Shown in pieces: positions 3,388-39,600 of a stretch of 64,000 nt of DNA (position 1 is the first letter of the stretch; the number at the start of each line of letters is the position of its first letter). Under the pieces are notes generated by a model that saw nothing but the letters and a program-made list of their open reading frames with translations, was not told where the DNA came from and searched no databases. Position numbers and translations under genes: made by a program. The stretch comes from Podarcis liolepis (Eukaryota): NCBI GenBank assembly GCA_965112155.1, contig OZ218099.1, one strand, 5' to 3'.

Positions 3388-4417
3388 TGCTACGACAGAC
3401 TTCCGCAGCTGCTCTGTTCAGGAGGTGTAGGATGGGACAGTGCATTCTGAGGCCTGCTGCTGCCTTTGTCTGTGGCCTTGGATGAATCACCTGGGTTACG
3501 TTTATCCCTCCCTGCGTCAGGCTTGTTCGTTTTTTTCCAGAAGGCCTTGGAGTCTGCCAGAGCATTCTGGGAAAGATGAACATCTTGTAAACAGGCAGCC
3601 TGTGGCCTTGGAGCCGCGTGCAGCCCTCTCTGCCTAATTTCTACCCAGGTACTTGGCAGGCAGGTAGAAAGAGAGGCCTGCTCCTCCTGCTTTTTGGGTT
3701 CTGTCCTGTCCATCTGACAGGATCTCTTGCAAAGGAGTAGCGGCGCTTGACAGGCAATGATGCCTTCCCTGCCTGCTGGTATAAAAGGGCAAGTTCCCTC
3801 AGGCCTCCTTGTCGCGACTGGAACTCCTCTGCTTCCCTGTTGTTGCTTCTCTGTCCCCTGGTTAGTGATCCGTTAAAGCCAGGACAGATACCCGGAACAT
3901 CTCCTTCCTAGCCCTACCTCACTGGGGTGGTAGGCAGGTCACGCTGACCCAGATTTCAGCACAGCATACCTGCCGGTGCCTCTCAGGAAGTCTCCTCCTC
4001 TGCCTGCGTTAATCATAAATCCACCCCAATCTCCTTGGTAACCTAAGCGGGGGCTTGCCTTGTGATTCTCACTCTGTGGGACATCCTTCGGGGTGAAGGT
4101 CGCTTGCTTGATGGCTCCCTGCTTGGGGGGGGGGAGCCATCTCCCCGCTACGGGGGTGTGTGTGTGATGAACCTGCCACTCGCAAGGTGAGTTCCTGGGA
4201 TCTGACAAGGGAGGAGAGACAGACACACAAAGAGAGGGAAAGGGAGCGGATGCTTCTCCTTGTAAGTCTCTTCTTCCTTAATACCTTTCCTCCACTGCTG
4301 AATTCCCTTAGAAATAAACAGCTTGCCACATAAACCATGCCCTCCTCCCCTCTCACTTGTAACTTGACCCTCCTTGTGGGCCTAGAGTTATTTTTAACCT
4401 CCCATTGACCCGCATAA
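3388..4417 (+). mobile_element. Putative solo LTR (~1.03 kb)
   Basis: Starts TGCTACG and ends CGCATAA(C), an imperfect TG..CA inverted terminus; cttt on both flanks (possible 4-bp TSD); TATAAAAG at 3780 followed by AATAAA at 4313, the U3-R-U5 order. Confidence 0.5.
3780..3787 (+). promoter_or_regulatory. TATA box (TATAAAAG) in the putative LTR, upstream of the TGFBR3L-like gene
   Basis: Consensus TATA sequence; TGGCCTTGG motifs at 3473 and 3603 upstream; AAG|GTGAGT donor after 4186 downstream. Confidence 0.45.
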
Positions 4418-4636: not shown

Positions 4637-5794
4637 GTAAGTGTTCCTCTGGCATTCCCTCTCCACATTCTGGCATTTGGCTTGCTGGGAGGTGGAACAC
4701 GTCCTGGAAACTTTTAATTACAGCCAGTCTAATCCTGTAACACTGAATCTTGCTGTCTCAATGCATCCTCCTTTTAAAACAGAGCCATAAAGGTGGGAGG
4801 GAAGTTTTTGTGGGAAACTTGAGACAGGAGAGAAGAACGCCTTTTTGACTGACAGAAGTTGGGACCAGAAGGTGAGGGAGAGTAAGTTGCCTTCAGGGAA
4901 AGATTTCAGATTCAGTCTATAGAACTGAGAAGCAGGTGTTGGGCAAAATCCTTCTGGCTAGAGACAGATCATCACAGTGGATAATACTGAGCAAAGTGGA
5001 CCGATGATCTGGATTAGGCTCACACATCTTCCCATTTTCAAGGAGTAGAAGCTATTAGATAGTAAACAGTTTGGAAGCAGGATAAGCTCTGGGGTCCCCA
5101 ATAGTGCCCTCCTCTTGGTGCCAGCCAAGATCCCCTGACCCCATTTTTTTTAAGAAATTGAGGCTTTTTGTGATGAGGAGAGTGGGGTTTTTTTGCAGGG
5201 GAGACATTGCCTGCTTTTTGTATCAGTTTTATTTCTTTTGAGTGGGTAGGTGTTTAGTCTGGTTTTTGGGGAGGAGGGAGGGGTGTCTGAGCATCACCCA
5301 TTTTTCTTCAGTGAAATGGGTATTCTTAGATTTCTGACTGTTTGCTCAGATTGAAAAGGTTGGAGACCCTGGCTATATGCTATACCCTTTCACTTTGTGG
5401 TGTTAATCGGAAGGGTGGTCACCACCTTCCCCTCTGCTTCCCACTGCACCAAAATGAAGTCCTTCCACCACCCCATTCTGCTATGACTGCGCATATGACA
5501 GGATAGTTGAAGGAATGTATAATCCGTATTAAGGGACATTGAGTGTGGTCTGTATGCTTGTTTCTGTAGCAGATAGATCAGGAACGGAGAGAGGAAATGT
5601 TGGAGTTCTGTCCCAAAATCTGAACCACAAATTGACTGGTATGAGGTCTTGAGGGCTGGAAAGTGTTTCCAAGTAGCTCAGAGGTTGTGCGACGGCATTC
5701 CCTTCAACTCCTGTGCTTTCTTGCCCTGGCTTTGCTTTCTTTCCTAGGGTGGAACAAGAGGGAAATCACAGCTTTTCTTTGGGTTCTGAACACC

Positions 5795-5879
5795 ATGCAT
5801 AGAAACTGCCTGCATATCGATCACCTATGGAGACAGTACCTCCTCCTGCTGCTTGTCGTCTGGGGGTGCTCTGGGACAG
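5795..5879 (+). CDS. TGFBR3L: TGFBR3L coding exon 1, signal peptide (MHRNCLHIDHLWRQYLLLLLVVWGCSGT); exon begins at 5748
   Basis: cacc-ATG context, hydrophobic LLLLLVVW core, ACAG|GTAAAA phase-1 donor, ttcctag acceptor at 5747. Confidence 0.75.
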
Positions 5880-8800
5880 GTAAAATCTAACAGAGTGGCT
5901 ATTGTAAACATTTAAATGGGCTGCACAATAATTATCCACACCAAAGGTGTAAAACGTTTTGCTAAAACCAAACCAAACCAAAACAAAACAAAACAAAAAC
6001 ATTATTGTAGGGGAGCTATCCAGGATACATTGCTGTATGTATCAGGATGTGTAGATGTAAAAAAGAAATTAGCAGTCTTAAAATACATTTTTCTTTGCAA
6101 CCTTGAATGTAGATCAGGTCTTTCAACTTTGCTAAATAGACATGTGTGCGCTCATACAGAGCCATTTGGACAGAGCCATTTGGACATTGTCAGAGTATAA
6201 ATGTATTCAATGGGGTTTTATACTAGGGGTTTGAGGGACGTGGGTGGTGCTGTGGTCTAAACCACTGAGCCTCTTGAGCTTGCGGATCGCAAGATTGGCA
6301 GTTCAAATTCACACAATGGGGTGAGCTCCCATTGCTCTGTTCCGGCTCCTGTCAACCTAGCAGTTCGAAAGCATGCCAGTGCAAGTAGATAAATAGGTAC
6401 TGGTGCGGCGGGAAGGTAAACGGCGTTTCCATGTGCTCTGGTTTCTGTCACAGTGTTCCATTGTGCCAGAAACAGTTTAGTCATGCTGGTCACATGACAC
6501 AGAAAAGCTGTCTGCGGACAAACGCCAGCTCCCTCAGCCTGAAAGCAGAGATGAGCGCTGCACCCCAAAGTCAAATTCAACTGGATTTAACCATTCATGG
6601 GTCCTTTACCTTTACCTTACTAGGGGTTTCCCAATTCTGCATGATGCTTCTGATGCCTTTTGTCCTGCTTCTCTTTATTGGATGTACCTTCAGTGAGCAG
6701 CTTGGATTTACAGAGTATCCTTCATTCTGTACCTGCTTATTTTCCACAGGATGCATTTTCAGTTCCTTGATAACCAAGTACACACAGCTAAGGGCACTTT
6801 TAACCTGCAGCTCGGCACTCAGTATTTGTTTTTGACATTGATTACCATAGGGCAGGTAGATGCTGCCTGTGGGTTGTTTATAGCACGGAGGCTCTTAAGC
6901 TATCTGCTCAACTCATAGCCAGCTGACCATGGTTGCTTCCTATAAAGAGAAGAGTCCAGGCTTCCAAAGTTGACCAGGAGTCATAGTTTCTGTTCTGAAT
7001 GGTGAGGGGAAGGCACTCTGCCCTTGCTGTAAGGTACTTCTGCTATTTCTTCACATTCCCAAATTGGGGGGGAAACACCCATGTTGAACACTCCTGCAGC
7101 TGTACTTTGGTACCTGGTACAGCTCTCTGTGGGTTGCAGGTGGCGCTGTGGGTTAAACCACAGAGCCTAGGACTTGCGGATCAGAAGGTCGGCAGTATGA
7201 ATCCCCACAACAGGGTGAGCTCCCGTTGCTTGGTTCCTGCTCCTGCCAACCTAGCAGTTCGAAAGCATGTCAAAGTGCAAGTAGATAAATAGGTACTGCT
7301 CTGGCGGGAAGCTAAACGGCGTTTCTATGTGCTGCTCTGGTTCGCCAGAAGCGGCTTAGTCATGCTGGCCACATGACCCGGAAGCTGTATGCCAGCTCCC
7401 TTGGCCAATAAAGCGAGATGAGCGCTGCAACCCCAGAGTCGGTCATGACTGGACCTAATGGTCAGGGGTCCCTTTACCTTTACAGCTCTCTGTTCCTTTC
7501 TCATGGTGCCAGTGCATATTCTTTCACATGGAATGTTAAGGCAGGTTGAGTTGGTAGAATCCTCATGTGCTAAATGGAATTGTACCATTTCAGGCTGCAG
7601 ATGGTGTGTGTGTTTTTAAACCCCTCCCCCCTAAAGCTGTCTGTGTGTAAAATTCTAGTACATTGAGGAGAAAGAATTAGCTGCCTGGGGCAACTTAATA
7701 ACTCTGCCCAGAAGCATAGGCAGAAACGAGAGAGCCCAGGCCAGGCAGCTCCTGAGGTCGCCCTGAGAATATTTGGTAGCTTTTGTTCTTTCCAGTATTT
7801 TAAATTGAAAATTGCCTTGGTAGAAAGGCAACAAACCAGCCCAGCCTGCTCCCTACTGTGTTAGCTTTCCTATTACAAGGAACTTTTTACATTGTAGTCT
7901 CAGAATAGTATATAGTCTGGTCTGCCACCACATTCTCACCCAGTCTTATTGTTGTGTATGTAATGTGTAGCTCCTGTGCAGGGCTAGCAGCTTCCCTGTA
8001 ATTATTTAATTCATAAAATGAATGGTCAGTGGTTAGAGCACCTGCTTTGCATGACGTAGGTCCCAGCTTCATTTCCCAGCATCTTCAGGTAGGACTGAGG
8101 TTGTCCCTAGAGAGCTGCAGCCAGTCAGTGCAAAAGACAATACTCTCATCTTCATAATGAAAACAGACTTTAAATAATAATTCTCTTTAATAGGGTTGAG
8201 TGCCAAACATGACCACTGAAAAACAAGAGGAGTGCCATCAACATGCCCAGGAGAAACGGGGGGGGGGGTGGAACTAAAAGGGAGGACCCCCCCCCAAAAA
8301 AAACACTTTCCCACCCAGCAAAGGCTCTACATGCTGAGTATCCTTTGGAAAAGGAATTTAAAGGGAAGGGGGAGACTGAGCCCCTTACAGTTTATAGTAT
8401 CTTCGTGGAAGGAAAGGATAGCTGACTGAAAAAGAAACACTTTTTTTCCCTTGTACAACTTGTACAATCTAAAAATAAGCCAGTAAGTCATTGTTAGGAG
8501 CAATTCACAGTGACCCTCCCCCCTCAGTGTGGGGACCATGAAATGCGCACCAATCCATTTCTGTCCCATCATACTAGTTCCCCCAGAGTTTCCTTGTTGT
8601 TTTATTCCCCCCCCCCCCATCGTCCTCAGTCATTGGCCAGATATTCCATATTTTTTGTTTCTCAGACACAGAATGAATTATGCAAAAAAAAAAGAAAAAA
8701 GAAAAAAAAGAAAAAAAGTTAAGCTGGTGTATCATTTTGAGCTCAGGCACCTGAGCACTTTGTGTTTGGGGAGAAGGGGATGCCAAACGTACACAGTTTT

Positions 8801-9321
8801 GGAAACTACTTTTCTGAAGCCCCGTTTCTTCCAGCATTGCTCTTCTCCTTCCCCTGCAGCCTCCTGGCACCATCTCGCTTGCCTCCCCATGTCTGCCTCT
8901 ACCCCACACCCCGTCCTCGGCTTCTGGGAATCACTGCGAAAAGGCAACGGATGCACCAGCCGGGGCCGCTCTACCCTGGGGCAAGAAGTCCATGTCATCA
9001 GCCTGAAGAAGGGATTGCCGGCAAATGGCCAGGTATGGGAGATCCCCACCCATACCACCTTGCCATGTATGAGGCTGTATGATGGGTCTCGCTACAGCTC
9101 CATTGGATACCCAAACAAGATGGCAGTTCAGCTTGGCACTACGGTTCAAGGTGTCTCAGTCAGTCAAAAAGGCAAAACTCTATTTCAAAGACATCTGAAG
9201 GCAGCCCTGTTTAGGGAGGTTTTATAATATTTAATGCTGTATTGTTTTTAACACTTGATTGGAAGCCGCCCAGAGTGGCTGGGGAAACTCAGCCAGATGG
9301 GTGGGGTATAAATAATAATAA

Positions 9322-9380
<59 letters not shown>

Positions 9381-12300
9381 ATCACATCTTCACAGTTGTC
9401 AGGGCCTGGCAGAAGTCTCTCTTAAGTCACAGAAGGGTTAGGTTAGCCAAGTTGTGAGAAGCAAAGAGGAAGACTCTGCGCAGGGCCTGCTTAGAGCTGG
9501 GGGTGGGGACAGACCTCACCTGCTGAACATCCAAGGGGTAAATTGCTTTGATCATGCATGTCTCCTTGATCCTCTTTCAGGTAACTCTGATAACTCTGGA
9601 CCCAGATCCCCTCGACAGAGCCCCCATCTTTGTGCTGTATTCCCAGAAGCCTGTGCGTTGGGTGTTGCTGTCTCCCCCTGGAAAAAACTGGACCTTCCAG
9701 GTGAGATGGGATAGAGGGCCAAAGGGCCTGCAGAACATCATGGGGATCACTGAGCCAGGCCCTGCCGAGGGGGTCGTTGGAGCCCCTACTCTACGCAAGC
9801 ATAGAAGATGAGCGGCAGCTATGGGAAGGGTGGATGGAAAAGCTAATTTGCTACCTTCATAGCACTTTAACAAAATACTTTCTACCTCTGTTTGTCTTCA
9901 GAACCATCTTGTGTAGTAAGTTACTATTCTTCCCATTTTACAGATGGGGGAAATTGAGGCTGAGGGAGGCTTGCCTAAGGCTGTGGCTGAGGTGGAACTT
10001 GAACCCAGATCTCCCAGACTAAAGTGCAGCACTGTTCAACCTTAGTGCACTCCCCAGGGTGGGGTGTCAGAGAGTGGGGAGGTCCTCCAGGCTAGTATAT
10101 TTTACCTTTGCCTTCCTCCTATCTACAGGTCTCCCCCGGCTCTAATGTTTCAGCCCCAGGGCCAGTGGCTTCTGCGGAGACCAACTTACCAAAGACGCCC
10201 AAACGCCTGCTGAAGTGGGCACGGAGGGAGCATGGAGGGGTCACCTCTCTGGCTGAATACCGTGGAGTCAACAGAATCTACACACGCCTGGGGGCTGGCA
10301 TGGGCGATGAGGGTAGATATCGGCTCTGAGGGAAAGGGTGTCATTATGGCTGTGTGTCCTGCAATTCCCCTCATCCCTGACCACTGGCCCCCCTGGCTGG
10401 GGCTGATTGGAGTTGCAGTCCAGCAACATCTGGAGAGACACATGTTCCCCATATTCGCTACTGCAGTGTGATAAGCAGGAGGAAGGAAGGCAGCTGGTCT
10501 TTTGGGTCCTGGGCTAATGCAGTAACTTTGTGCAGGTCTGGGTCTGGTCAGTGCTTGGCAGGGAGACCATCCAGGAAGGAAAGATCTGTGCACTACAATC
10601 ATAGAGGGAAGATGGAATATATACACGGCACAGATAAATAAGACTCACCAGTATTAACTGGAGAGCAGTTGCCAAAGAGTTTGCATTGCTTGCAAACAAA
10701 AAAGAGTAAATCGCAGCAGCTCTTCTGTGACCATTCAGTCCAGATGCTTCATTCCTTTCCTTCTCCAGATAGGATTGCCCCAGCCACTTGCAGATTAAGT
10801 AGGAATTTCCTGACCCCGGTGCACTTTGCCTCCAAGTGCCAACTCCAGCCTCTGAGAGTTTGCCTGCATCCTGACCCTCCGCAAATCCTTGAAGTTCACA
10901 TCATCCTCTCCAAAGGAGTTGCACCAAGGTGCGTATCAGGCAGGTGTCGCCGGAGCTTCAGCATGCGGCTGTTGAACCGGGGTGTGTGTGTGTGTGTGTG
11001 TAGCGAAATGTTCATAATGAGATGCCATGTGTTGAACAGGGAGGTTGAAATTGTCCTTAGTGTAGATGGGGGGAAGGGGGATGGTGAGGAAGAATGAAAC
11101 CTGTGCAAGAAGCTGCGTATGATAAGTGACCCTTGTGTTAAAGATATAAACAGGAACATGGAAGCTGGTTCATCTAGCCTAGTACTGCTGACACGGACTG
11201 GCAGCAGATCTCCCATGTCTTTCTCAGCTCTGTCTGGAGATGATGGGGATCGTATCTCTGACCTTCTGCATGCAGAGCAGTTGCCCTGCCACTTAGCAAT
11301 GACACTTCCCCCGAAAATCAAGGCCAGACGGACACTGAGACCCTGAGCCAAAAACGAGTAGTGACAGTGGCTGGTATTAGGCCTTGAATATTGGGCAGGG
11401 GTCTCTTGAGTTGGGGGACGGGTGGCGTGGGGCTTCTCTGTCTTCCATCATGTGCTTAATCCTGTTGTGGTGGGTGGACAGCCTGCTCTCTTCTAGGCCC
11501 ACCCTGGCTCATTTGACTGTGGAACTTCATGCTGTCCGAAGGCCCCCCCACTGGGGACTGATCTTGATACTGAAGAGTGAGGGAGCTGCTGAGTGGATGG
11601 TTCACACCCACCGCCTCACTGGCCGGCTGCATGTCCTGGTAGGGGCAGGGCATAGATCTGTAACGCTCTCAGCTAATGCGCTTCTCTCTCTCTCCCTCCC
11701 CAAGTTGGTGGCAGTGGCACACATCTGGAAGGGAGCAGGGCACACATGTGCTCAAATCCAGATACAGTGGTACCTCAGGTTACAGGCGCTTCAGGTTACA
11801 GACTCCGCTAACCCAGAAATAGTACCTCAGGTTAAGAACTTTGCTTCAGGATGAGGACAAAAACCATGCGGTGGTGGCGTGGCGGCAGTGGGAGGCCCCA
11901 TTAACTAAAATGGTACCTCAGGTTAAGAACAGTTTCAGGTTAAGAACGGACCTCCAGAACGAATTAAGTTCTTAACCTGAGGTACCACTGTAGATGCATT
12001 ATGCAGAATTGCAACCTTTCCTAGAGGAAGCAGTTTGGTAATTTTAGATGCTGGACTTAATACTATTATAAGGGTTATATTATGGAGGGTTCCTTCTGCT
12101 AAGTCCTGCCTTCACAGGCCCACTAGCGAGCTTTGCCAACCCTCTTCCATAAGCTTCCCCTGCATTCTCCCTATAACTCTAGGCTTGCCTCCTCCTCCTC
12201 CTCCAGCCTTATTATTTTTCCTGAAGTGAGCCAAGGAGTCTTACTTCCTGGCTCCAACTCTCCACCCCACTAGGCTACTCCCTCTTGGGAGTTTGTCTCC

Positions 12301-15300
12301 ATGCTGCCATTTGATTCCCCTGGACCGTCTCTTGTTTATGGTGTGCCTGCTGCTGCTGCTGCTCTCCATGTCTGGGCCTTGTATATGTAACTCAGGCTGG
12401 GATTCCTTTCTAGGCTTCGCACAAAGTCACAGTCAGCAGCACAGAAATGGATCTGCCTCTGACTGTGACCCAGCGGATGTCCCCTCGGCTGACGACCCTC
12501 GACCCTTTGCAGTTTGCAATGGAGCAGAATCTGCCTGCCTTTACGTCCTACGTTGAGGCTGAGCGGGTGAACAGGTTTCTCCTTTTTGTTGGGATGAATG
12601 GTAGGTTTGGAGAGATTCAATGGACATGAATGGGAAAAGTGCCCACCAGAGAGCTTAGAGGCAAACCACTAGTGACCGCTGCTGCAGATTCCTGGCATTT
12701 ATATTCCAGTTCCTTCTGCACCATTTTACCCTAGGCTATACAACCTCCAGTTTTATTTTAGGAATGCACCAAATCAAAACATTTTCAGCATGAAAATTAT
12801 GCTTCCAAGGGGACTGAAATGGTACATACACACCAGCCAACAGCATATATTTGTTAACAGATATTTTGCTGCTTCACTGCCATTTTCCCAAACCCTTTGG
12901 AGAGCTTATTTCCTAGTCGTTATGTGATCCCAGCCAATCAGGATTCACGTAGGGATGATAAATGGTGTCAAATAGGCAATCGGCTGTGGCTACAATGGTA
13001 AAATCAAGAAGGGCAAATGAAGCCACATTGCCTTTGTTCTGAATGCTGAACCCATGGAAGAGAACAGGAAGGCATGCCATATTATGTCAGAATGTGCAGA
13101 CCTTTTACTTGGGTAACAGAAGGAATAGATATGGGGTTGCCAACGTTCTTGGGCCCATGGGCAAGTCTGCAACAGAGAAATTGTTGTGAGTACCCTGCCC
13201 TCTCCTGCAACCTATTCTATGGGCTCCAATAGAATGCTTCTTCTGAGCCTAATTTCAGTGCTGGGAGGGGAGGGTACCCTGCAGACTGTAAGAGAAGGCC
13301 TCTGTGAGCTGGGCACATGTGTTCCTTTGGGGCCACACTGGTGATGCTTGGAATAGATCATATTCTGATTAACAGCAGCAGCGTATAAGGCATATGATTG
13401 CATCACACCCACACACCTGTATTTCCTTTGTAGGGGCCACACCTCCTCTAGAAGAGCCAACACTCTTTTGGCCCATATTTTTGCATCCTCCCAGTTTCAC
13501 AGCCTCTCAACAGCACTTTGCAGAAGCCAACACAGCTGGCTGGGAGGTGACAAGGCAAGACTTTGCGGGAGAGGATGGTTCCGTTACCTACCCACCGTCT
13601 ACAGCCAAAACAGAGGGGACAGAATCTATCTTGTGTCTTGGGGACCAGAAGCCTATTCTTGAAAACCAGGACACTCAGAGCGTGAGTAGCCAAGGATGAC
13701 ATCTCCAGATGGACAGAGGGAATCTATTTCCTACAGTGCCATTTCATGTGGATGTGGATGGGCGGGTATTCTCTTGTCATTGTACATCAATACCGCTCCA
13801 CAGACCTGTTTTTCTCCTGCAGGTCTCCTGTATTTCACCTTCTCCAACCCAGATATCTCCCTCAGAAGCTGCAACGGCCTTTCAGGATCCCCACCTTCAC
13901 CTTGGCAATGCCCTCCTTAACCTAGAGCTCTACAACACAGAGGCTTTTGCCAAGCAACTTGGACCTTTTGTCGTCTCAGCCAACAGCCTCGTCTTTGTGG
14001 AGGTAAAGCGGACGAGGAATATGCAAGAGCTGGCATTGGATGCAGCAGTTACACACCAGAATCTTGTCCCTAAGTGATTCCTCCTCTGTCCAGAGATCTG
14101 GTGGTTTGCAGCACTCCCTGTCTCTCTCAGAGCCTCAAACAGGGCAGTTGACCTGCTTGTTGCTTTATGGGGGGTGATAAACTTACACTGCAGCTCTCAA
14201 AGGGATGAAGTAAGAGGGGTGATTTGCCACCACGTTTTAGCAGCTTAGAATGGCAACATGCATCCCAGGGAAGCAAAACATGCATCTGTAAGCAAAAGAG
14301 CAAGGAATAGACTAGGCAGATTTCATACTGAGGCCCAATTCAAGGCCCAACTTTATGGTTGGTTGGCAATGAAAAAATAGGTATAAAAAGAGAATTCCTG
14401 GATGCCAAGAACCAGGTCTGGGGCAAGTATTCTTTGGTGAGAGAACCCCAGCAGAAATTTAAAATAACAAACACCTAGCAAAGTAAAGCGTGGAAATATA
14501 GGTTGTCATTCTTAGAATATAACTTTCTAAGTTCCTTCCAAAATTCCCCTCTTCTCTTAGCATAGAAAATACCATGTGTGGGGCAAGTTAAAAATGGTTT
14601 ACTTACAAACTCTCCAAAGATCAGATTCATGTGCTTTTCAATGCAGCATTCAGAAAACGTCAGCAGCAAAACTTGCACTTGTGTTTGCAGACTAGATGGT
14701 GTTTCCTTTTTCCTCCAGGCTTCCTTGGCAACCTATGACTCGTCTCTCAGCTTCACCATCCAGAAGTGCTTCATCTCTAGCTCCTCAGATGCTTCAGAGA
14801 CCTCGGTGTATCTGCTGGTCCAGCATGGCTGTCCCGTGGCTGCCGCCCAAGTCAGGCTGTGGAAACCCAAGCTGCCAGGCCAGGCCCAGGCGTTGCCTCT
14901 GGGGTACCAGGAACGCCAGCGACTGAGCTTTGTGTTGAAACCCCGGTCCAATGCCTCCATCCACTTCTTGCACTGCCGTCTGAGCCTCTGCAGCAGGGGG
15001 TCTCAGGACTCCGCCAGACCCAAGGGCGCAATCCCCAAGGTCTCTGGCTCCCTGGGCTAGGGAACCCTGTCTTCTAGCAGCTGTCTGAGGGCCTGATAGC
15101 GCTACTGCTTCAGAATAGGCTCTCCTGATTGGGGATGCTTAGGGAGGAAACTGATATGCCACAGCAAGCTCTCCACATGGCCCAGAGGTAGCCAAAATGG
15201 TGCCCTCTGCTCGATGATGACACTGGCTTCATAATTCCCAGCACCTCAGCTAGCATGGCCATTGGCCAGGGGTGATGAAAATTGTAGTCAATTGGTATCT

Positions 15301-18300
15301 AGGGGGGCACCATGTTGGTTACCCCTTAGCTTATTATTACTGCCTCCTCTGAATGGCAGTATCCCTCAAGTGTTTCAAGCAGAGGTCTTTCCTTTGATAT
15401 GTTTGGCTGGGGGCCCCTCTGTGTGCTTTGCCCCTCAGCTATGACTGGCCCCTTCCAGAAATCCTTGGTCCATCTCTGCTTTGAGGGTGGAAGGCCTCTT
15501 TATTCCAAAAGATGGAATCAAGAGGAAAGCGAAACCCCTTGGAGGGGTGGAAACCCTCTGGAATGGGCCTGTGCAAAAGAGCCTCCCTGTTAGCTGTAGA
15601 AATGAGCTGGCTGGGCTTATGGAGAAGCAGGTGGGATGTAACTAGGCCAAGGCCTACCTCCCACTGTTGGGATGAGGCACTCTTCTGAGGCAGGTTTTTG
15701 TTTCAGTGTCGGTCTGAGAACGAGGCCTGCAGCGGAGAAGAGGAGGCGGTCCCAAGCCGCTTCCAGCGCACCATCACAAAGCCTATGCTAGTGACTGTGG
15801 AGACTCCGCTCCGAGCTGCCTTTCCTGGCCCGAAACCAGGTACTTTCCTGTGGGTTCTAGATAGCAGCTAGAAGAGAGTTGTTGGCTTGAAGGCCTTGCA
15901 GTTCAGCACCCTGGCTCCATGCTGGAGAGAACTGCCCTGCAGAGTGAGTGAGGAACTGAAAGAAACGGATGGGGGAGTCCTGCTTGCTAGGGAGATGGAA
16001 GCGTCTTGGTGTGCATCTCTCCAGAGCAGAGGTGGTGGACCTGTAGCCCTCTAGATATTCTTGGACTCCAGCTCCCATCACCTCAAGCCAGCATGGCCAA
16101 TGGCAAGGGATGATGGGGCTTGTAGTTCACCAGCATCTCCTACCCAGGAGATTGATGCCTTGGCTCTCACCATGCTACAAGCTCAGACTTTGCCAATGAC
16201 ATCTTACATGTTCATCCTGAGTGAAGCAAAGTAGCAATGATGGGCAGAGTTATGCACTCATTCCTTTTCTCCCCCTTGCCACCCGGAGGCTATTTTCTTC
16301 AGACACTCCCTCAGATTATCTGTTCCTTCCTTGACTTTGGTGTCTTTTTCTGCAGCTAATGTCCCAGACAAACAGCAAGGAAAAGCACCAAAGGATGCAG
16401 CCCACAAGCGGAAGACTCAGGTAGTCCGAAGTAAGTAAACATCCCCATGATCTCTTGCTGGCCTTGTTTCCCGGGGATTTGGGGACTGAAATCAGTTTTA
16501 GACTGGGATTCTACTCCTGGCTCTGGGGGGGGGGGGAGTGGAGTTGAGGATTCCTGCTGCTGTGGGTTGGAGCAAGAACTCTGATCCTCAGACTTTTTCA
16601 TTCTGTATTACCCCATTTCTGGCCCTGGCCCATCTCCCCTTCCTGGACAGAGAGTGAGAATGAATTTTCGTGCTCTTTCTCCACACATCCTCCCCATTTC
16701 CCGCTTCTCTATAGCTGCAGCTACGCCAGGCCAGACGGTCCCTGCAGTAATTGGGATAGCTATTGCAGCCTTCCTCATCGGCATCTGCCTCACTATTGGG
16801 CTCTGGCTCATTTACACCTATACAGGTGGGTATGAGGAGGCTCCCCTCAGTGCTGTAGGTACCACCTATTTTACTTGAATGATTGATTTTTGGCAAAGCC
16901 TGGGGGAGCACACCTTAGCATTTCTGTAAAGGTAGACTGGGCCTCATGTCCGAGATGGGAAAACTCCAAATTATAGATCATGACACCTTTCATCAACCTA
17001 TTGCCTTCCAGCTGTTTTGGATTTTAGCTCTCATCACTAGCCAGCCATGCTTGCTGGGCCTGGACCAGGAGTTGTTCTCCCAAGCATCTGGAGGGCACCA
17101 GGTTGGGGCTGGTTGGCTTCTGCCAACTGTCTGCCTCCATCTCTTCCGTCAGAGACAGAATATGCATTATTCAGTCACATGTACACAGGTTGAGTTACAG
17201 TAGGGCATGGATCTTGGGGTGGAAGCTGGCAGCCAAATGATCCCCATTGCAGTTGGTTTCTAGGAAGGATCATGACCCTTAGGCGATCGAAGATGCAGCA
17301 GCTGAAATACATATTGGAATCAATGTTACAAAAAAGTCTGGAGGGGATTATGTGTCTGGGAAATTTGCATCATTATTCATATTGGTCTGCCTTTGCACAG
17401 TTGTACTTGTCCACCCATCCACCATGGAAAAAAGAAATAGAAACAGAACAAATAGGATGATAAAAAGGCCAGACAGTCAAAGGAGGAAAGTAAAGGTCAG
17501 AGGGGAGGGAGAGGGATTTATGTGCACATCCATGATATTGATCCCCGTCTGCTTTTTATTTCTGGTTATTTTTTATTATTAGACAGTGCACATGCATTTT
17601 CACACCTTTCTCTGAAATGAGGCGGTCTGAACAAAGCTTTAATTACTAAATTTTAATGCCAGCCTTGAACTCGTAGGTGAGTCGGCTTCCGGGAGGAGGA
17701 GCCAGCCTGCAGCTGAGACAGGTAAGGTGACACATTGGCTTTTGAGAAATCCTTCATTTGAGCAGAGGCTTTGATTCTGCACTCATTTCCATCTCTGGCT
17801 GTGAATGGAATCAGTGGTGCACGCTTATATTAACTTTTAATTATTTTTCAATGTTTAATTATTTCAAACTGGTTCTTTAATTGATAATTTCAACATTATA
17901 AGCACCTTAGATGTTTGACTACAACTAAGCAGTATACAAAATTTGTTAAATAATAATGAATGCATATTGCATGGGTGTCCAGTTCAGCAACCACAGGCAC
18001 ATATGCACCTTGAGACCTTCCTGGTGCCTGCAAGTCCCCTTCCCTCTGCTGAATAAGGCTTCCAAAAAGTCACCTATTGTAGCTAATATAAGGCAGGGAG
18101 AGTTATCTTCCAGCTATACCTGGAGATGCTGGTGAACTGAACCTGGGACCTTCTGCATACACCTGGACTCGTTTGAAGCATCCATAATGCAAATGCACTT
18201 GGAGTGGGCAGAGCCAGGAATTCAACTAAGCTGTCCTTACTACAGCAGGTTGCTGTATGCAAGAGAGCCAGTTCATTGCCTCCAGGATTAGCCAGTTTTA

Positions 18301-20197
18301 AATATACCCAAGCTAGGGCAGTTTTGCTTCATCTCAATACTTAAAAGTGGAACATTATAAATATGCTAAGGCTTGGAGAAGCTAACATATGCAAATAGGA
18401 AGAGGGTGCATTTGCTTACCTCTGGAAGGGGGTTAGTGTGGTGGTGAGATGGATGGTTGCAGTGCAGTTGGGGGCGGGTGGGGGGCACTGCTGCATTTTC
18501 TTTCTTCCTCCTGCTAGACCCTGTAGGACCATCTGCTCCAAAGCGTGAAGACACTTTGTCAGCTCCAGCTGCAGCTGGCCCTGCACGTCGCACGTGGTGC
18601 TCTACCCTAAGAAGCCTCTACCGAAGAAGGTAACTAGATTTCAAAAAGTTCATGGGAGGAATGAATTTGGAGAATTGGAAGGGGATTATTTATTGACTTG
18701 GATCCTTTGTGCCCCCTGCATTTCCAGAGTTTGCCTCTGCAAATATGCAGGCTTATACAAGTAGCGTGGTGATGTTTTTGAGTGATTTTTGTTGATAATA
18801 ATAATACAATAATTTATTATTTATGCCCTGCCCAACGGCTGGGTTTTCCCAGCCACTCTGGGCTGCTTCCATCAAAATATTAAAATACAATAGTCCTTCA
18901 GATATTAAAAGCTTCCCTAAACAGGGCTGCCTTCAGATGTCTCCTAAAAGTCTGGTAGTTGTTTTTTCCTTTGACATCTGGTGGGACAGTATTCCACAGG
19001 GTGGGAGCCATTACCGAGAAGGCCCTTTACCTGGTTCCCTGTAACTTTGCTTCTTGCAGTGAGGGAACCGCCAGAAGGCCCTCGGCGCTGGAGCTCAGTG
19101 TCTGGGCAGAATGACGGGGGTGGAGCCACTGGACCAAGGCTGCTTAGGGCTTTAAAGGTCAGCACCAACACTTTGAATTGTGCTCGGAAATGTACTGGGA
19201 GCCAATGTAGGTTTTTCAAGACTAGTGGTATGTGGTCTCAGCAGCTGCTCCCAGTCATCAGTCTAGCTGCCGCATTCTGGATTAGTTGTAGTTTCTGGGT
19301 CACCTTCAAAGATAGTCCCATGTAGAGCGCATTGCAGTAGTCCAAGCGGGAGATAACTAGAGCATGCACCACTCTGGTGAGACAGTCTGCAGGTAGAAAG
19401 GGTCTCAGCCTGCATACCAGATGGAGCTGGTAAACAGCTACCCTGGACACAGAATTGACCTGCGCCTCCATGGACAGCTGTGAGTCCAAAATGACTCCCA
19501 GGCTGCACACCTGGTCCTTCAGGGGCACAGTTACCCCCATTCAGGACCAGGGAGTCCTCCATGCCTGCCTGCCCCCTGTCCCCCCAAAACAGTACTTCTG
19601 TCTTGTCAGGATTCAACCCCAATCTGTTAGCCATCATCCAATCTCCAACCGCCTCCAGACATTCACACAGGACCTTCACTGCCTTCACTGGCTCTGATTT
19701 GAAAGAGAGATAGAGCTTTCAGCACATTTATTTTAACTTTTAATGGACTTTTGTTGCATATTGTACTTTGTTGTCTCTGCAACTCACTTTGGGACTTGAA
19801 GCAATACACCAGTTGAATAGATGGAATTGTTCATGGGATGCATTCCATGTCTAACTGAGAGATGGAAGTCAAAACTAGTAGGGATTTTGTATTTGAAACT
19901 GGTCCTTTTGTTGTTCGTCCCATATTAGCATTCACAAATGAGATACTCCAGACCGAATGGAAGGAAATTTTTTAGGGTCAGTTATAAAAACATGCCTCTG
20001 CAGCTTTAAACACTGCAACTGTTAGCTGATGAGTCTGTGATGGTAGCACAATAACAAATATGTAAAATGTTTGCTGGACGAGAGAGGAATGGGGAGCTTG
20101 GGTCCATAATAGGTTGTCAAGAGAGGCAGGCAAAGAAGGGCCAGTGGGGAAGTCTAGCCTGTCATCCGCACTGATTTATCTATCTTATAGGTTCTAG
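5795..20197 (+). CDS. TGFBR3L: TGF-beta receptor type III-like protein (betaglycan/endoglin family), whole spliced CDS span, ~755-760 aa: signal peptide, orphan domain, linker/vestigial ZP-N, ZP-C, TM, short tail
   Basis: About 16 phase-compatible exons whose peptides align colinearly with TGFBR3 motifs (GCTSRG..EVHVI, LLKWARREHGGVTS, NFL, LILILK, TSY..RVNRF, LELYNT, six-Cys ZP-C, TKP EHP, TM IGIAIAAFLIG). It neighbours EVI5L, as TGFBR3L does at human 19p13.2. The symbol is inferred from synteny plus divergence from TGFBR3. Confidence 0.82.
6235..6617 (+). mobile_element. Sauria SINE, full length
   Basis: GGGACG head with tRNA-like A/B boxes, (ACCTTT)n tail, TSD tactaggggttt. Confidence 0.9.
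7131..7480 (+). mobile_element. Sauria SINE, full length, second subfamily
   Basis: Same head and core, cctttacctt tail, TSD tacagctctctgt. Confidence 0.9.
8860..9032 (+). CDS. TGFBR3L: TGFBR3L coding exon 2, start of orphan domain
   Basis: ctgcag acceptor and CAG|GTATGG donor; CLPMSASTPHPVLGFWESLRKGNGCTSRG..QEVHVISL resembles TGFBR3 CELSPVSASHPVQALMES..GCASRG..QEVHVLNL. Confidence 0.9.
9180..9378 (+). mobile_element. L2-type LINE 3' fragment with expanded (TTA)n tail (9323-9378)
   Basis: Matches the 3'UTR of the 18795 element (gccgcccagagtggctggggaa); similar remnants at about 32835-32890 and 34855-35005. Confidence 0.8.
9581..9700 (+). CDS. TGFBR3L: TGFBR3L coding exon 3, orphan domain
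   Basis: tttcag acceptor, CAG|GTGAGA donor, 120 nt, phase 0-0; VTL..IFVLYSQKPVRW resembles VTL..VFLLNSPHPLVW. Confidence 0.88.
9860..10030 (-). mobile_element. MIR/CORE-SINE remnant
   Basis: cccattttacagatgggggaaattgaggctgag..acttgaacccagatctcc core motif. Confidence 0.6.
10129..10312 (+). CDS. TGFBR3L: TGFBR3L coding exon 4, orphan domain; ends at 10312 (GT donor) or 10297 (GC donor)
   Basis: VSPGS..LLKWARREHGGVTSLAEYRGVNRIYTRLG resembles VSEGS..LLNWARKEYGAVTSFTELKIARNIYIKVG; both donors are phase 1. Confidence 0.88.
10769..10928 (+). CDS. TGFBR3L: TGFBR3L coding exon 5, orphan domain
   Basis: ttctccag acceptor, AG|GTGCGT donor; DRIAPATCRLSRNFL..C..EVHII resembles DQVFPPKCNIGKNFL..C..EVHII. 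Confidence 0.9.
11497..11638 (+). CDS. TGFBR3L: TGFBR3L coding exon 6, orphan domain
   Basis: Phase 2-0; GLILILKSEGAAEWMV resembles NLILILKCKKSVNWVI. Confidence 0.88.
11765..11990 (+). mobile_element. Tc1/mariner-type MITE, family A
   Basis: TIRs CAGTGGTACCTC..GAGGTACCACTG with TA TSD; homologous to 45293-45518. Confidence 0.88.
12414..12600 (+). CDS. TGFBR3L: TGFBR3L coding exon 7, end of orphan domain
   Basis: Phase 0-1; FTSYVEAERVNRFLL resembles ITSYTMAPVANRFHL. Confidence 0.88.
13434..13681 (+). CDS. TGFBR3L: TGFBR3L coding exon 8, linker plus first strand remnant of ZP-N
   Basis: ttgtag acceptor, AGC|GTGAGT donor, open frame in phase 1-0 that bridges exons 7 and 9; ends ESILCLGDQKPILENQDTQS. 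Confidence 0.75.
13823..14002 (+). CDS. TGFBR3L: TGFBR3L coding exon 9, start of ZP-C
   Basis: VSC..GNALLNLELYNTEAF..ANSLVFVE resembles FNC..GNITFNMELYNTDLF..ENGHVYVE; GAG|GTAAAG donor. Confidence 0.9.
14719..15039 (+). CDS. TGFBR3L: TGFBR3L coding exon 10, ZP-C core
   Basis: FTIQKCFIS..HGCP..RLSFVLKP..FLHCRLSLCS..IPK resembles FAIQTCFIS..ICP..RFSFVFKP..FLQCELTLCT..LPK; 321 nt. Confidence 0.92.
15707..15839 (+). CDS. TGFBR3L: TGFBR3L coding exon 11, ZP-C end and EHP
   Basis: CRSENEAC..RTITKPMLV resembles CVPPDEAC..KTFTKPLAV; phase 0-1. Confidence 0.88.
16356..16430 (+). CDS. TGFBR3L: TGFBR3L coding exon 12, basic juxtamembrane stalk
   Basis: Strong acceptor tctttttctgcag, GAA|GTAAGT donor, 75 nt in phase 1-1 with no stop. 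Confidence 0.7.
16715..16825 (+). CDS. TGFBR3L: TGFBR3L coding exon 13, transmembrane helix
   Basis: VIGIAIAAFLIGICLTIGLWLIYTYTG resembles the TGFBR3/ENG [29 protein letters not shown]; alternative acceptor at 16721. Confidence 0.92.
17677..17721 (+). CDS. TGFBR3L: TGFBR3L coding exon 14, cytoplasmic (GESASGRRSQPAAET)
   Basis: cgtag acceptor, CAG|GTAAGG donor, phase 1-1; resembles TGFBR3 GETAGRQQVP. Confidence 0.7.
18518..18629 (+). CDS. TGFBR3L: TGFBR3L coding exon 15, cytoplasmic tail; if the donor is not used, TAA at 18631-18633 ends the protein
   Basis: Strong pyrimidine tract plus ctag, open in phase 1, AAG|GTAACT donor. Confidence 0.55.
18795..19717 (-). mobile_element. 5'-truncated L2-type LINE (RT C-terminus plus 3'UTR, frameshifted)
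   Basis: LNPDKTEVL, LGVILDSQL, SRLDYCNAL..LQLIQNAAARL and LHWLP..FKVLVLTFKAL across three frames; (TTA)-rich tail. Confidence 0.9.
20191..20197 (+). CDS. TGFBR3L: Probable TGFBR3L terminal exon start (..RF*), followed by 3'UTR
   Basis: tatcttatag acceptor fits phase 2; TAG at 20195-20197; candidate ATTAAA poly(A) signal at 20869-20874. Confidence 0.4.
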
Positions 20198-21332
20198 GAT
20201 GTTTTTCCTGTGACCAAGCACCTGTTTCGGTGAATCCGCTTGCATTCCCCTGTACCAGCAACTCTTTCAGGCCACAACATCTTTATGGCTTCAGTCCAGC
20301 AGCACAACCGATTCTGAATCAATACCTTTCGACACTGGAAAACTTCAGACTTTAAGCTTTAGCTTAAATAAGCAATTGTGTTTTCTGGCAGTTGTATGGG
20401 ATTTTCATTGCTTTGGGTAGCTGCCTGGAGAGAGCTGTGCTGCTTCTTCATTGAGTTTTGCTCTTCGTTTCTGCACTGCTAAGTGTGGACTAAAAGGCAA
20501 ACTCAGGCTGAAATCTTCGCAGAATGTTTGCACTACTGCCCCTCATCTTTGGGGAAGCTGTTAGCTACCATTGTGGCCTTGCAATCGCTCTTAGGCCTGC
20601 TTCAGCACTTTGGGAGAAGAGAACCATCGTTGCATTTGGCTGACATTGCCATTGGGGATTTGGTTGTTGCTTCCTATCTGACTATAGTAATACCTTGTAC
20701 TCTCTTTGTAGGAATGTTATTTTGGGATATAAATGGTAGTTTTCATGCCATTGCCCAGCTTCACAAGGAAACAAAGCTGATTGCTCCACAAAATGATTCA
20801 AATTCTGAAACCTTTTGGGTCTTTTTTTTTAGTTAACCACCTTGCAAATGATAAGTTTCTCCAGTTTTATTAAACAGATGTGCAAGAGAGTTGCTGAGGC
20901 TCTTTCAATAGGCAGTCAAGTGCCCCCATTGCCTTTAAACACCACTTGTTCCCTGCTTTGTCTACAGAAGCCTGATTCAATAGGATAGACAACTGGAAAG
21001 TATGTACTTGAGAATTTGGCTGGAGACAGAGTAAACAGCCTCTAAATCTTGTGTGTGATCATAAGTGTGGAGAGAAAAGGTGAATGTTGCTTTTGGTATA
21101 TTTTCTTCAACAAATACAGAAATAGCATGCAATCAATTCCACCCATAAACTGTGCTATTGTGGGGAAGGAAATGCTGTATTTTGGGCAGGGATGGTGAAC
21201 ATGTGATCCTGCTGGACTCCAACTCCCATCTCCTCCAGCACCGGTTACACGGACTGGGGTTGGTAGGAGTTGGGAGTCCAACCTCCCTGATGTTGCCAGA
21301 GATTTTGCATGAGGCTTGGGAGTCTTGTGTCA

Positions 21333-36600: not shown

Positions 36601-39600
36601 GGCATTTGGTTGGCCACTCTCAGAACAGGATGCTGCCCTAGATGGGTCTTTGGTCTCATCCAGCAGGGTGGTTCTTAAGAGTTTTTGTTTTTTTTTAAGT
36701 GGTAAGCAGAGTAGCATTAATTACCATACCGGCTTCCCAAAGCATTGCTCCAGCGCTAGCCATACAGAAAAAGGATTGTGCATGCAGGTTTTGCTCCCAT
36801 TTTTATTTCACTTGGTTGACTAAGGAGCGCACCAGTCTTTTAATGCTACATGTGGTTCAGTCCCTATGACCCCACAAGGTATATGAAGGGGGGCTGCTCC
36901 TTTGAAAGCAATCCCATCTAAAACCCTTTGCATGTGTGCAAAGCTAAGCTATCGCTTTCCTGAAAAGGCTAAGCTAGAATCCATCTCTCGGACACAAAGT
37001 GCTTTGAATGGAAGACTTTGATACATATGCTGCTTTAAAAGGGCAATGCCCTGAAGGCATCCAGCCCAGAAATGCTATCATGCTTCTCATTCCAGTTGTG
37101 CAACACTGCCCCCCAAAAGACTTCCAGCTCCCCCAAATCTACACAAGGCCCATTTAATACAACCCCCAGATCTACATGCTCCGAAAGGGCCTGTTACGTT
37201 ACAGAAAGAAGGTTCTGTACTCTTAGATTCTGCTTGGGAGGCGCAGCCTGCAGCAAGGGTTGGGGAGGGCCAAAGAATTTCACGTTTTTCTAGGCGCAAC
37301 TGTAAGAGATGTGTGCCTTATTAGTTAAAAATTGTAATTCCTAGAAACTGTAATATTTATATGCCTTATGTCAGCATAAGATGTGAAAACATAATGTTCC
37401 AGGAATTTGTCTTTACACAGAGCCTGTGCCATCAGCCATATTGTGTATCCAAGGAACAGATGTCCAGTCATCGAAAGCAATTCGCAAATTCAGAGAATAC
37501 CTGTGGGCAGAGGCAGGAAACCATTTAGGTGAAACCACAAACCTTACCTTCTGCCCTTGAGAGGTATCTGTGACTTGCCCATGGACTAGGGGGCAAATGG
37601 GCTTCATAGACTGAGGGAATGTGAGCCTCCTTCCTCTTTCCAAGCCTACGACACCACACCAGCTTTTCTTCTCTGAATAATACCATCTGCATTCATCATG
37701 GTTCCTCCCCACCCCAAGTCTTTTCCGGCTGGCAAAGATCTTAAGTAGGTCCTCCATCAGACTTAATTAAGAACCACTTGGTGAGTGTCTGGGACCCATT
37801 AGAAGCACTACAGTGTCTGTCTCTAATTGGAAGCACTGTGTGCTTTTGCAAAATAGTTACCCTTAGCTGTACATCAATGTGTGTGCCGATGAAACAAATA
37901 CACAGGAAGAAAAACACAATGAGATAGCTGCCCTCAGAAGCTCAGGTGTGGTGACCCAGGAGGGCATTTTCTGTGGCAGTTGTGGAATTCCCTCCCCCAC
38001 AATGGTGTGTCTGGCAACTTCACTGTAGTTGGTGAATACAGATGTGCCTCTTTCCCCTGGCCTTTGACACTCAAGAGATATTTTAGGACCCACACAATTT
38101 CTGTGGCTGTAAATTGTGGTAATAAAACAGCAGCCGCTGAGGAGTGCAAACACAGACAGACGTGGGGGGTGGGGGAAGGTTAGCTTTGAGAGATCTTTTA
38201 GGAAAGATCTCCCCACCACCCCCTTTACTGCCAATTTGTTGTTGTTGAACAGTTGGCTCTGTCCTACTTTATTTCATGATTAATTTCTGCAGTGAGAGAG
38301 GGGTGGAGATGTCTATAGACATCTAAGTCTGGGCCAGAAGCAATAATATGGGAAGCTGTATGAAAAGACTGACGGACAAATTAATAACTTATTGAGCTAA
38401 ATTGCAGGTACACATGTAAGGAAGCTGGGGTCTGATGAATTCATAGACAGGGCAGTCCTTTTTGTGCTTTCTTGCACTAACAGGACGAGAAGCAGTATCC
38501 ACAGTTGCCTGGGGATTTGTGTTTTACATATCATGCCAATACCTCCCAACTTCAAGAAGTGCTGCTACTACTAAAATCTAACAGAGCTGTAAAATATTCT
38601 GATTCCCATGAAAAACAGAGTTCAAGCCTAATCCTAAGCAAAACTTTATTCAGTGGCATGTAGCATCAAGTAACTGAACAGGATTAGTTTAGAATAAGGG
38701 TTAAACAGGCTGTCCAAGGATCATTCAGTGTTAATGCTAAACAGCTGAAAACTTCCTATTTGTACAGCACAAGAAAGGACCCATGACAGCAATAAGAACA
38801 CTGATGAAGAAAAACAGTAAGTATTCTTATTGGGAAAGATTGGTTTTCTTACAAAATAGGAGGTCCTTCCCTTTGAAATCTGAGTGTGGCATTCTCACAG
38901 GACAAGCGAAGTATTTGTCAGTATTGGTGTTGGTTATGCCACTTCCACAATCAGATGCCAGACCTTGTTTGCAACTTCTGAGTTTGCCCAGTATTTGGGG
39001 CATATACTAAGCTTCCCATATATGTATCTCAGTGCAAGGAAAGAAGTGTTGTACGCAAGGGAGGGTTTGTATGAGTTGCCTCTCTGCCTGCAGGCATTTG
39101 AGGCAATAATACAAGAGGAGTCCTGTAGTATAAGAAAGTCAAGGTGATGTTAAGTCATCCACATAATCTACCTTACGATTCTAAACAGAGTGGTACACAA
39201 CTCTTACATAATTAGCAAAAGTATTTTGTTCAAAAGTAGCCCAACTTTAAACACTAAAGGTAAAGGTAAAGGGACCCCTGACCATTAGGTCTAGTCATGG
39301 CCGACTTTGGGGTTGCGGCACTCATCTCGCTTTATTGGCCGAGGGAGCCGGCGTACAGCTTCCGGGTCATGTGGCCAGCATGACTAAGCCACTTCTGGCG
39401 AACCAGAGCAGCGCACGGAAACGCCGTTTACCTTCCCGCCGGAGCGGTACCTATTTATCTACTTGCACTTTGACGTGCTTTTGAACTGCTAGGTTGGCAG
39501 GAGCTGGGACCGAGCAATGGGAGCTCACCCCATCGCGGGGATTCGAACCGCCAACCTTCTGATCGGCAAGTCCTAGGCTCTGTGGTTTAACCCACAGCGC

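Follow-up and report, generated by a model that had tools for sequence, protein, structure and literature searches.

A predicted orphan domain joined to ZP-C in a lizard TGFBR3L gene and the betaglycan-like origin it suggests

Did the short protein encoded by mammalian TGFBR3L begin short, or is it what was left of a longer one? To our knowledge, TGFBR3L is known only from mammals, as a short ZP-C-only protein that makes pituitary cells responsive to inhibin B. The question is raised by a 64,000-nucleotide stretch of DNA from the lizard Podarcis liolepis (contig OZ218099.1 of assembly GCA_965112155.1; the whole stretch is called the window here), in which a first-pass annotation had seen a TGFBR3L-type gene carrying the complete orphan domain of betaglycan (TGFBR3). 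We consider it likely that this lacertid TGFBR3L encodes a 764-amino-acid co-receptor with an orphan and a ZP-C domain, that this layout is reduced from that of betaglycan, and that the orphan domain is functional but does not hold TGF-beta as betaglycan does.

Reading of positions 5700 to 20300, with each junction inspected, gave a gene of 15 exons on the plus strand, between 5795 and 18633. All introns are GT-AG, all splice phases are consistent, and the exons total 2295 nucleotides, or 764 codons. They are colinear with Podarcis and Zootoca gene models (85 to 100% identity per exon) and predict a signal peptide, an orphan domain spread over six exons, a linker, ZP-C, a transmembrane helix, and a short tail:

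5795..5879, plus strand: exon 0, with ATG and signal peptide; hydrophobic core, GT donor at 5880, phase 1 end matching the exon at 8860
8860..9032, plus strand: orphan exon 1, with the first two conserved cysteines; cag acceptor, phase fitting exon 0, 97% identity to the Podarcis protein
9581..9700, plus strand: orphan exon 2; phase 0 at both ends, splice sites, match to the Podarcis protein
10129..10312, plus strand: orphan exon 3; ends in phase 1, 95% identity to the Podarcis protein
10769..10928, plus strand: orphan exon 4, holding conserved cysteines three and four as well as the counterpart of the OD2 TGF-beta contact loop; aligns to rat and zebrafish betaglycan orphan domains
11482..11638, plus strand: orphan exon 5, with the equivalent of the betaglycan binding loop and the next strand; alternative in-frame acceptor at 11497
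12414..12600, plus strand: orphan exon 6, the last; ends in phase 1, 98% identity to the Podarcis protein, alignment with the final part of betaglycan's orphan domain
13434..13681, plus strand: linker exon of about 80 amino acids; the Gly codon left open at 12600 is completed at its acceptor, and its donor lies at 13682
13823..14002, plus strand: remnant with the last ZP-N cysteine, and first part of ZP-C; splice sites, alignment to turtle and TGFBR3
14719..15039, plus strand: ZP-C core exon of 107 codons, phase 0 at both ends; splice sites, match to betaglycan ZP-C structures, tree
15707..15839, plus strand: end of ZP-C and membrane-proximal cysteines; splice sites, 96% identity to the Podarcis protein
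16356..16430, plus strand: basic stalk exon; splice sites, protein match
16715..16825, plus strand: transmembrane exon; 49 to 58% match to TGFBR3 transmembrane segments
17677..17721, plus strand: cytoplasmic exon; splice sites, protein match
18518..18633, plus strand: last coding exon, with the stop taa at 18631-18633; 100% identity to the Podarcis protein over 30 amino acids

Exons were searched singly, and the Podarcis proteins P0084 (P. muralis) and P0249 served as full-length proxies in the search of solved structures, in fold prediction, and in the trees. The Met at 5795 is the start in the 765-amino-acid model of Podarcis lilfordi, which matches the 15-exon gene from that residue onward, as well as in several RefSeq isoforms and in isoform X2 of Eublepharis. 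The six orphan exons lie where the first-pass annotation had put them; their AG acceptors and GT donors are in place and the phases carry over. Two of its other statements had to be amended. The orphan exons are not joined directly to ZP-C, since the linker exon at 13434-13681, which had been missed, intervenes, and the coding sequence does not reach 20197, the stop standing at 18631-18633. The linker exon also displaces a direct join, considered at first, between the exon at 12414-12600 and an acceptor at 13866. The transmembrane exon and a tail of about 50 amino acids give a single-pass membrane layout, the helix being predicted at residues 726-758 of the Podarcis proxy. Orphan exon 5 has two in-frame acceptors, 11482 and 11497, that lie 15 nucleotides apart; use of 11497 would drop five residues. 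Lacertid models take 11482, with the five extra residues, and the loop is shorter in other squamates.

Compared with lacertid TGFBR3-like proteins, the six orphan exons show 85 to 98% identity (tblastn E values of 1e-21 to 1e-33) and contain no stops or frame breaks. The exon at 10129-10311 by itself matches solved betaglycan orphan domains (E = 2.2e-7), and residues 82-401 of P0084 align to residues 30-360 of human TGFBR3, that is, to the whole orphan domain (E = 2.5e-29). In an AlphaFold model of P0084 made from a 45-row alignment, the predicted local distance difference test (pLDDT) score is mostly 85 to 95 over the orphan domain (residues 80-400); the model is also confident over ZP-C and the membrane helix, and disordered over residues 401-508. 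Foldseek matched this model to the rat and zebrafish betaglycan orphan domains over about 340 columns (E values of 1e-22 to 1e-18), and to the orphan region of endoglin at 3e-13 only. Four of the five conserved betaglycan orphan cysteines are kept, those at alignment columns 17 and 41 lying in orphan exon 1. Every TGFBR3L row has Ser in place of the fifth, whose position reads Gly in one zebrafish crystal construct, so that in betaglycan this cysteine is presumably unpaired. As modeled, then, the lizard protein contains a complete two-lobed orphan domain of betaglycan type with two likely disulfides, a domain that mammalian TGFBR3L proteins (279 to 343 amino acids, ZP-C only) do not have, as had been proposed.

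ZP-C is also readily recognized. Its core exon matches betaglycan ZP-C structures at E = 1e-12, residues 501-679 of P0084 align to residues 582-755 of TGFBR3, and Foldseek matched betaglycan ZP-C to the model with a template modeling (TM) score of 0.85. Between the two domains lies a linker exon that is fast-evolving and predicted to be disordered (pLDDT below 35). Alignment with turtle and TGFBR3 sequences indicates that the core of ZP-N is gone between 13681 and 13823: what is left of ZP-N is the first strand, together with its cysteine, in the exon that ends at 13681, and the last cysteine in the exon that begins at 13823. A ZP-N match (PF23344) is present in turtles and in TGFBR3 and absent from the squamate proteins searched. 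In the predicted turtle isoforms X7 and X8 the ZP-N core is left out, and the junction used is precisely the one that lizards have fixed. Judging from these alignments, squamates have lost the exon (or exons) encoding the ZP-N core, and their linker is the leftover of ZP-N.

Which gene this is was asked of the ZP-C exon and of the orphan domain separately. When the ZP-C exon was run through HMMER against 1.8 billion representative proteins, 60 proteins were found; the best named matches among them were reptile “TGFBR3-like” entries, with marsupial, guinea-pig, and amphibian TGFBR3L lower in the list. A careful maximum-likelihood tree of the region from ZP-C to the C terminus (37 rows) recovered a TGFBR3L clade (support 93/87) that spans mammals, amphibians, lungfish, and coelacanth, a tetrapod TGFBR3L clade including the mammals (98/94), outside which the lungfish and coelacanth fall, and a TGFBR3 clade (98/98). 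The window exon lies inside TGFBR3L as sister to Podarcis, and the order roughly follows the species tree. In the orphan-domain tree, made by a quick method, all TGFBR3 sequences from sturgeon to mouse form one clade (support 100) with the reptile TGFBR3L sequences outside it. Endoglin is the outgroup in both trees, TGFBR3 is monophyletic without the window gene in both, and Podarcis has a separate TGFBR3 of 844 amino acids. The trees thus argue that the orphan domain was inherited from an old duplication and not borrowed recently from TGFBR3. With ZP-C grouping with TGFBR3L, mammals included, and with neither TGFBR3 nor endoglin, the earlier assignment stands, and at the level of sequence the identity of the window gene as the TGFBR3L orthologue of the mammalian inhibin B co-receptor is secure.

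Protein identity was compared region by region between Podarcis and eight other squamates, with TGFBR3 of the same species pairs for reference. In TGFBR3L it is 67 to 82% for the orphan domain, 59 to 71% for ZP-C, 36 to 67% for the linker, and 19 to 50% for the tail; the corresponding values for TGFBR3 are 87 to 92%, 75 to 85%, 62 to 82%, and, for the transmembrane segment together with the tail, 91 to 94%. TGFBR3L thus evolves two to three times faster than TGFBR3 in squamates. Because the orphan domain is the best-conserved part of an otherwise fast-evolving protein, we infer that it is functional. Disabling changes in the orphan exons of related squamates, which would have spoken against the first-pass annotation, find no echo at the protein level, where the domain is intact in about 25 squamate species and more conserved than ZP-C.

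The long form is not new as an object, since RefSeq and UniProt already contain squamate “TGFBR3-like” models with orphan and ZP-C domains. A search with a skink protein found such models (PF26060 and PF00100) in about 25 squamate species, among them geckos, skinks, anoles, iguanians, lacertids, an amphisbaenian, an anguid, a monitor, and several snakes. One lacertid cluster contains many isoforms from Podarcis muralis, P. raffonei, and P. lilfordi, with Zootoca in a cluster of its own. The predicted proteins of P. muralis (XP_028573155.1), P. lilfordi (CAI5766353.1), and Tiliqua (XP_066469001.1) represent the same gene with the same exons and layout and differ from the window product at the species level only, although none of those listed is identical to it. 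The idea of a special, third architecture in this lizard is therefore set aside. In the literature mentioning TGFBR3L, subscription journals being outside the search, we found no paper on the long form, and among the papers that also mention an orphan domain none deals with a non-mammalian protein.

Across vertebrates, predicted proteins differ in the modules that they contain. Turtles have orphan, ZP-N, and ZP-C; squamates have orphan and ZP-C without a ZP-N match; a caecilian and salamanders have ZP-N and ZP-C; and a frog and mammals have ZP-C only. Models from lungfish, coelacanth, and tuatara are truncated and start inside the orphan domain, those of lungfish and coelacanth having ZP-N as well. 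A turtle protein of 822 amino acids (Terrapene XP_029769740.1) is orthologous to the lizard one, the identity being about 55% for the orphan domain and 48% for ZP-C, and keeps a recognizable ZP-N (PF23344) whose core the lizard has lost. This distribution of modules therefore suggests that the ancestral TGFBR3L was a full twin of betaglycan. The earlier suggestion that the lizard protein is close to the ancestral TGFBR3L is thus half right: it is nearer to the ancestor than the mammalian form, but its layout is itself reduced, turtles keeping orphan, ZP-N, and ZP-C.

The lizard protein can be placed against its relatives as follows. With mammalian TGFBR3L, an inhibin B co-receptor of pituitary gonadotropes (PMC8673766), it shares ZP-C, a single transmembrane helix, and a short tail; the mammalian protein is extracellularly ZP-C only, to which the lizard protein adds an orphan domain of about 325 amino acids and an 80-amino-acid linker. 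Betaglycan has the same orphan fold, four cysteines in common, the ZP-C fold, a similar transmembrane segment, and a colinear order of domains. It differs in its complete ZP module and conserved tail, whereas the lizard protein lacks the ZP-N core, has a poorly conserved tail and replaced TGF-beta contacts, and belongs to a separate old clade. Endoglin has a distantly related orphan fold and a ZP module, and is a far weaker match than betaglycan (E = 3e-13 versus 1e-22).

Is the long form what the gene mainly makes? In the annotation of P. lilfordi, alternative forms come from PASA assemblies of RNA-seq and IsoSeq reads from heart, kidney, liver, lung, and tail (PMC10214862), and most of its listed TGFBR3L isoforms run from the orphan exons through ZP-C, which lends the join indirect backing from transcripts. 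Sequencing runs guessed to be RNA contain 0.14 to 0.19 of the sampled words, roughly in line with the estimated share of exons, and are given no weight here. If borne out, such isoforms from somatic tissues would therefore mean expression outside the pituitary, unlike in mammals; by analogy, TGFBR3L of the lizard type may be expressed beyond that gland. A reading in which the long form is minor or tissue specific, with the main pituitary product a short ZP-C-only protein from an internal promoter downstream of 12600, would agree with the existence of short reptile models and with the many predicted isoforms of relatives. We consider it unlikely: no listed lacertid isoform lacks all orphan exons, conservation within the protein peaks in the orphan domain, a strange pattern if that region were seldom used, and the 5' ends of the short models resemble truncations within long-form exons. 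Among the predicted isoforms of relatives, some start at exon 3 and others (P0246 and P0255 of Podarcis, P0090 of Eublepharis) are without the transmembrane exon or skip the 321-nucleotide ZP-C core exon in frame; those without the transmembrane exon could be secreted forms. Some Podarcis isoforms use an extra terminal exon, 19058-19111, that lies inside an open reading frame resembling a long interspersed nuclear element (LINE). A promoter module of SF-1 and EGR1 sites like the mammalian one was not found, motif scans near the 5' end giving matches at chance level. Two SF-1-like sites, 3473-3481 and 3603-3611, lie on the minus strand 130 bp apart and about 2.2 kb upstream of the ATG, without EGR1 between them, and are no more numerous than expected by chance.

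What the orphan domain binds is the next question. Betaglycan-TGF-beta structures published in 2025 show contacts at F49, in the OD2 loop (L208, L210, and L213), and in the binding loop that ends F250, Q251, V252, and D253; Ala at F49, L210, L213, F250, or D253 abolishes TGF-beta binding (PMC11865472). The eight positions are invariant in 10 TGFBR3 sequences, except for one Ile at L208, and read as follows in the window and in reptile TGFBR3L:

F49: L in the window; L, I, or Q in reptile TGFBR3L
L208: L in the window; L, V, or F in reptile TGFBR3L
L210: P in the window; P, S, or L in reptile TGFBR3L
L213: F in the window; F in 15 of 15 reptile TGFBR3L sequences
F250: T in the window; T, S, I, R, G, or P in reptile TGFBR3L
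Q251: L in the window; L or a gap in reptile TGFBR3L
V252: A in the window; A in 14 of 15 reptile TGFBR3L sequences
D253: H in the window; H in 13 and R in 2 reptile TGFBR3L sequences

The OD2 loop, LSLNYL in betaglycan, is LTPVHF in the window, and here the equivalences are firm. The binding loop of reptile TGFBR3L is unlike that of betaglycan in both sequence and length, its pLDDT in the model is low, and the ZP domain of mouse TGFBR3L does not bind TGF-beta2 (PMC8673766). With the contacts replaced, the loop different, and the mouse ZP nonbinding, the lizard orphan domain is, from its sequence, unlikely to bind TGF-beta in the manner of betaglycan. This bears on the proposal of a dual co-receptor, in which orphan and ZP-C would bind TGF-beta as in betaglycan and ZP-C would also bind inhibin. 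The two modules on which high-affinity TGF-beta binding by betaglycan depends are indeed present and conserved, L208 is kept, and the changes F49 to L and L213 to F stay hydrophobic. We nevertheless rate this proposal as quite improbable, its TGF-beta part being weakened by the same three observations: five residues that are invariant in TGFBR3 (F49, L210, L213, F250, and D253) are replaced across reptile TGFBR3L, reading L, P, F, T, and H in the window; the binding loop is different and modeled with low confidence; and the mouse protein is inactive toward TGF-beta2. The lizard protein would still be a cell-surface co-receptor for a TGF-beta-family ligand, and, by orthology, ZP-C may serve, as it does in mice, to present inhibin B to the activin type II receptors.

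Could the reptile gene instead be a separate old paralogue that mammals have lost? The support for the TGFBR3L clade as a whole, which stays under the starred level, and the long mammalian branches with their differing composition would leave room for this. We regard it as very improbable, because tetrapod TGFBR3L is well supported and excludes lungfish and coelacanth, in agreement with the species tree; the searches brought up only one such gene per reptile species in addition to TGFBR3; and NCBI names the long form TGFBR3L in Malaclemys, Chrysemys, Carettochelys, and Varanus. The gene neighborhood also has a bearing here. Turtle copies of TGFBR3L are filed as MAP2K7 isoforms, which we read as a sign of neighboring genes; MAP2K7 adjoins TGFBR3L in humans, where MAP2K7, SNAPC2, and EVI5L lie on 19p13.2. 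The filing thus hints at an adjacency of TGFBR3L and MAP2K7 in turtles. Motifs of MAP2K7, SNAPC2, CTXN1, and TIMM44 were not found within the 64-kb window. The window also includes, on its minus strand between about 58.2 and 28.2 kb, a multi-exon RabGAP-TBC gene in which long exons encode coiled coil; it is convergent with TGFBR3L, and a protein atlas labels it RabGAP-TBC and no finer. Two of its peptides appear to match human EVI5L exactly and not EVI5. In humans EVI5L lies in the neighborhood of TGFBR3L on 19p13.2, and EVI5 in that of TGFBR3 on 1p22. We treat the synteny as suggestive only. That the orphan exons are a decaying remnant joined by gene predictors to a working ZP-C gene is scarcely credible: the gene does evolve two to three times faster than TGFBR3, yet its six orphan exons have neither stops nor frame breaks, about 25 squamates and many turtles have the domain intact, its identity exceeds that of ZP-C, and its predicted fold is confident.

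Several points weigh against the main reading. The joining of the orphan exons to ZP-C rests on splice logic and on the gene models of relatives, and constraint was gauged at the protein level. Short ZP-C-only models exist for some reptiles (311 amino acids in Gopherus, 317 in Chrysemys, and 325 in Alligator); they could be real short isoforms or incomplete predictions. In the orphan tree, the lungfish orphan fragment falls on the TGFBR3 side (support 84), on a long branch. Finally, the alignment of the binding loop crosses gaps, and its residue equivalences are less sure than those in the OD2 loop.

The window also contains repeats. Just 3' of the TGFBR3L stop, an open reading frame on the minus strand (18900-19700) resembles the tail of a LINE reverse transcriptase. 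In the intron that follows the first orphan exon there is a perfect microsatellite (19 copies of ATT, 9322-9379), and a 30-bp minisatellite of 7.8 copies with 99% identity (47778-48011) lies within an intron of the RabGAP gene. A dispersed repeat, probably a lizard short interspersed nuclear element, is recognizable from similar translations and occurs in at least four copies (6257-6580 and 7325-7588 on the minus strand; 39251-39481 and 43909-44199 on the plus strand).

Taken with the comparative data, the lizard gene shows TGFBR3L to be an old sister of TGFBR3 whose original layout was that of complete betaglycan. Turtles have kept the three modules, squamates have lost the ZP-N core, and mammals have lost both orphan and ZP-N. 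A further, tentative possibility is that the reptile orphan domain binds another TGF-beta-family ligand or partner, that reptile TGFBR3L is a broadly expressed two-site co-receptor, and that the mammalian ZP-C-only form of gonadotropes is a late, stripped-down derivative. The value of the finding lies in this comparative picture and not in a single lizard gene that is already predicted in many species. The short TGFBR3L of mammals is the remnant of a gene that began as a full twin of betaglycan, which gives specialists a testable question and raises others: what the partner of the conserved reptile orphan domain is, whether inhibin B specificity predates the truncation, and when the mammalian N-terminal part was lost.

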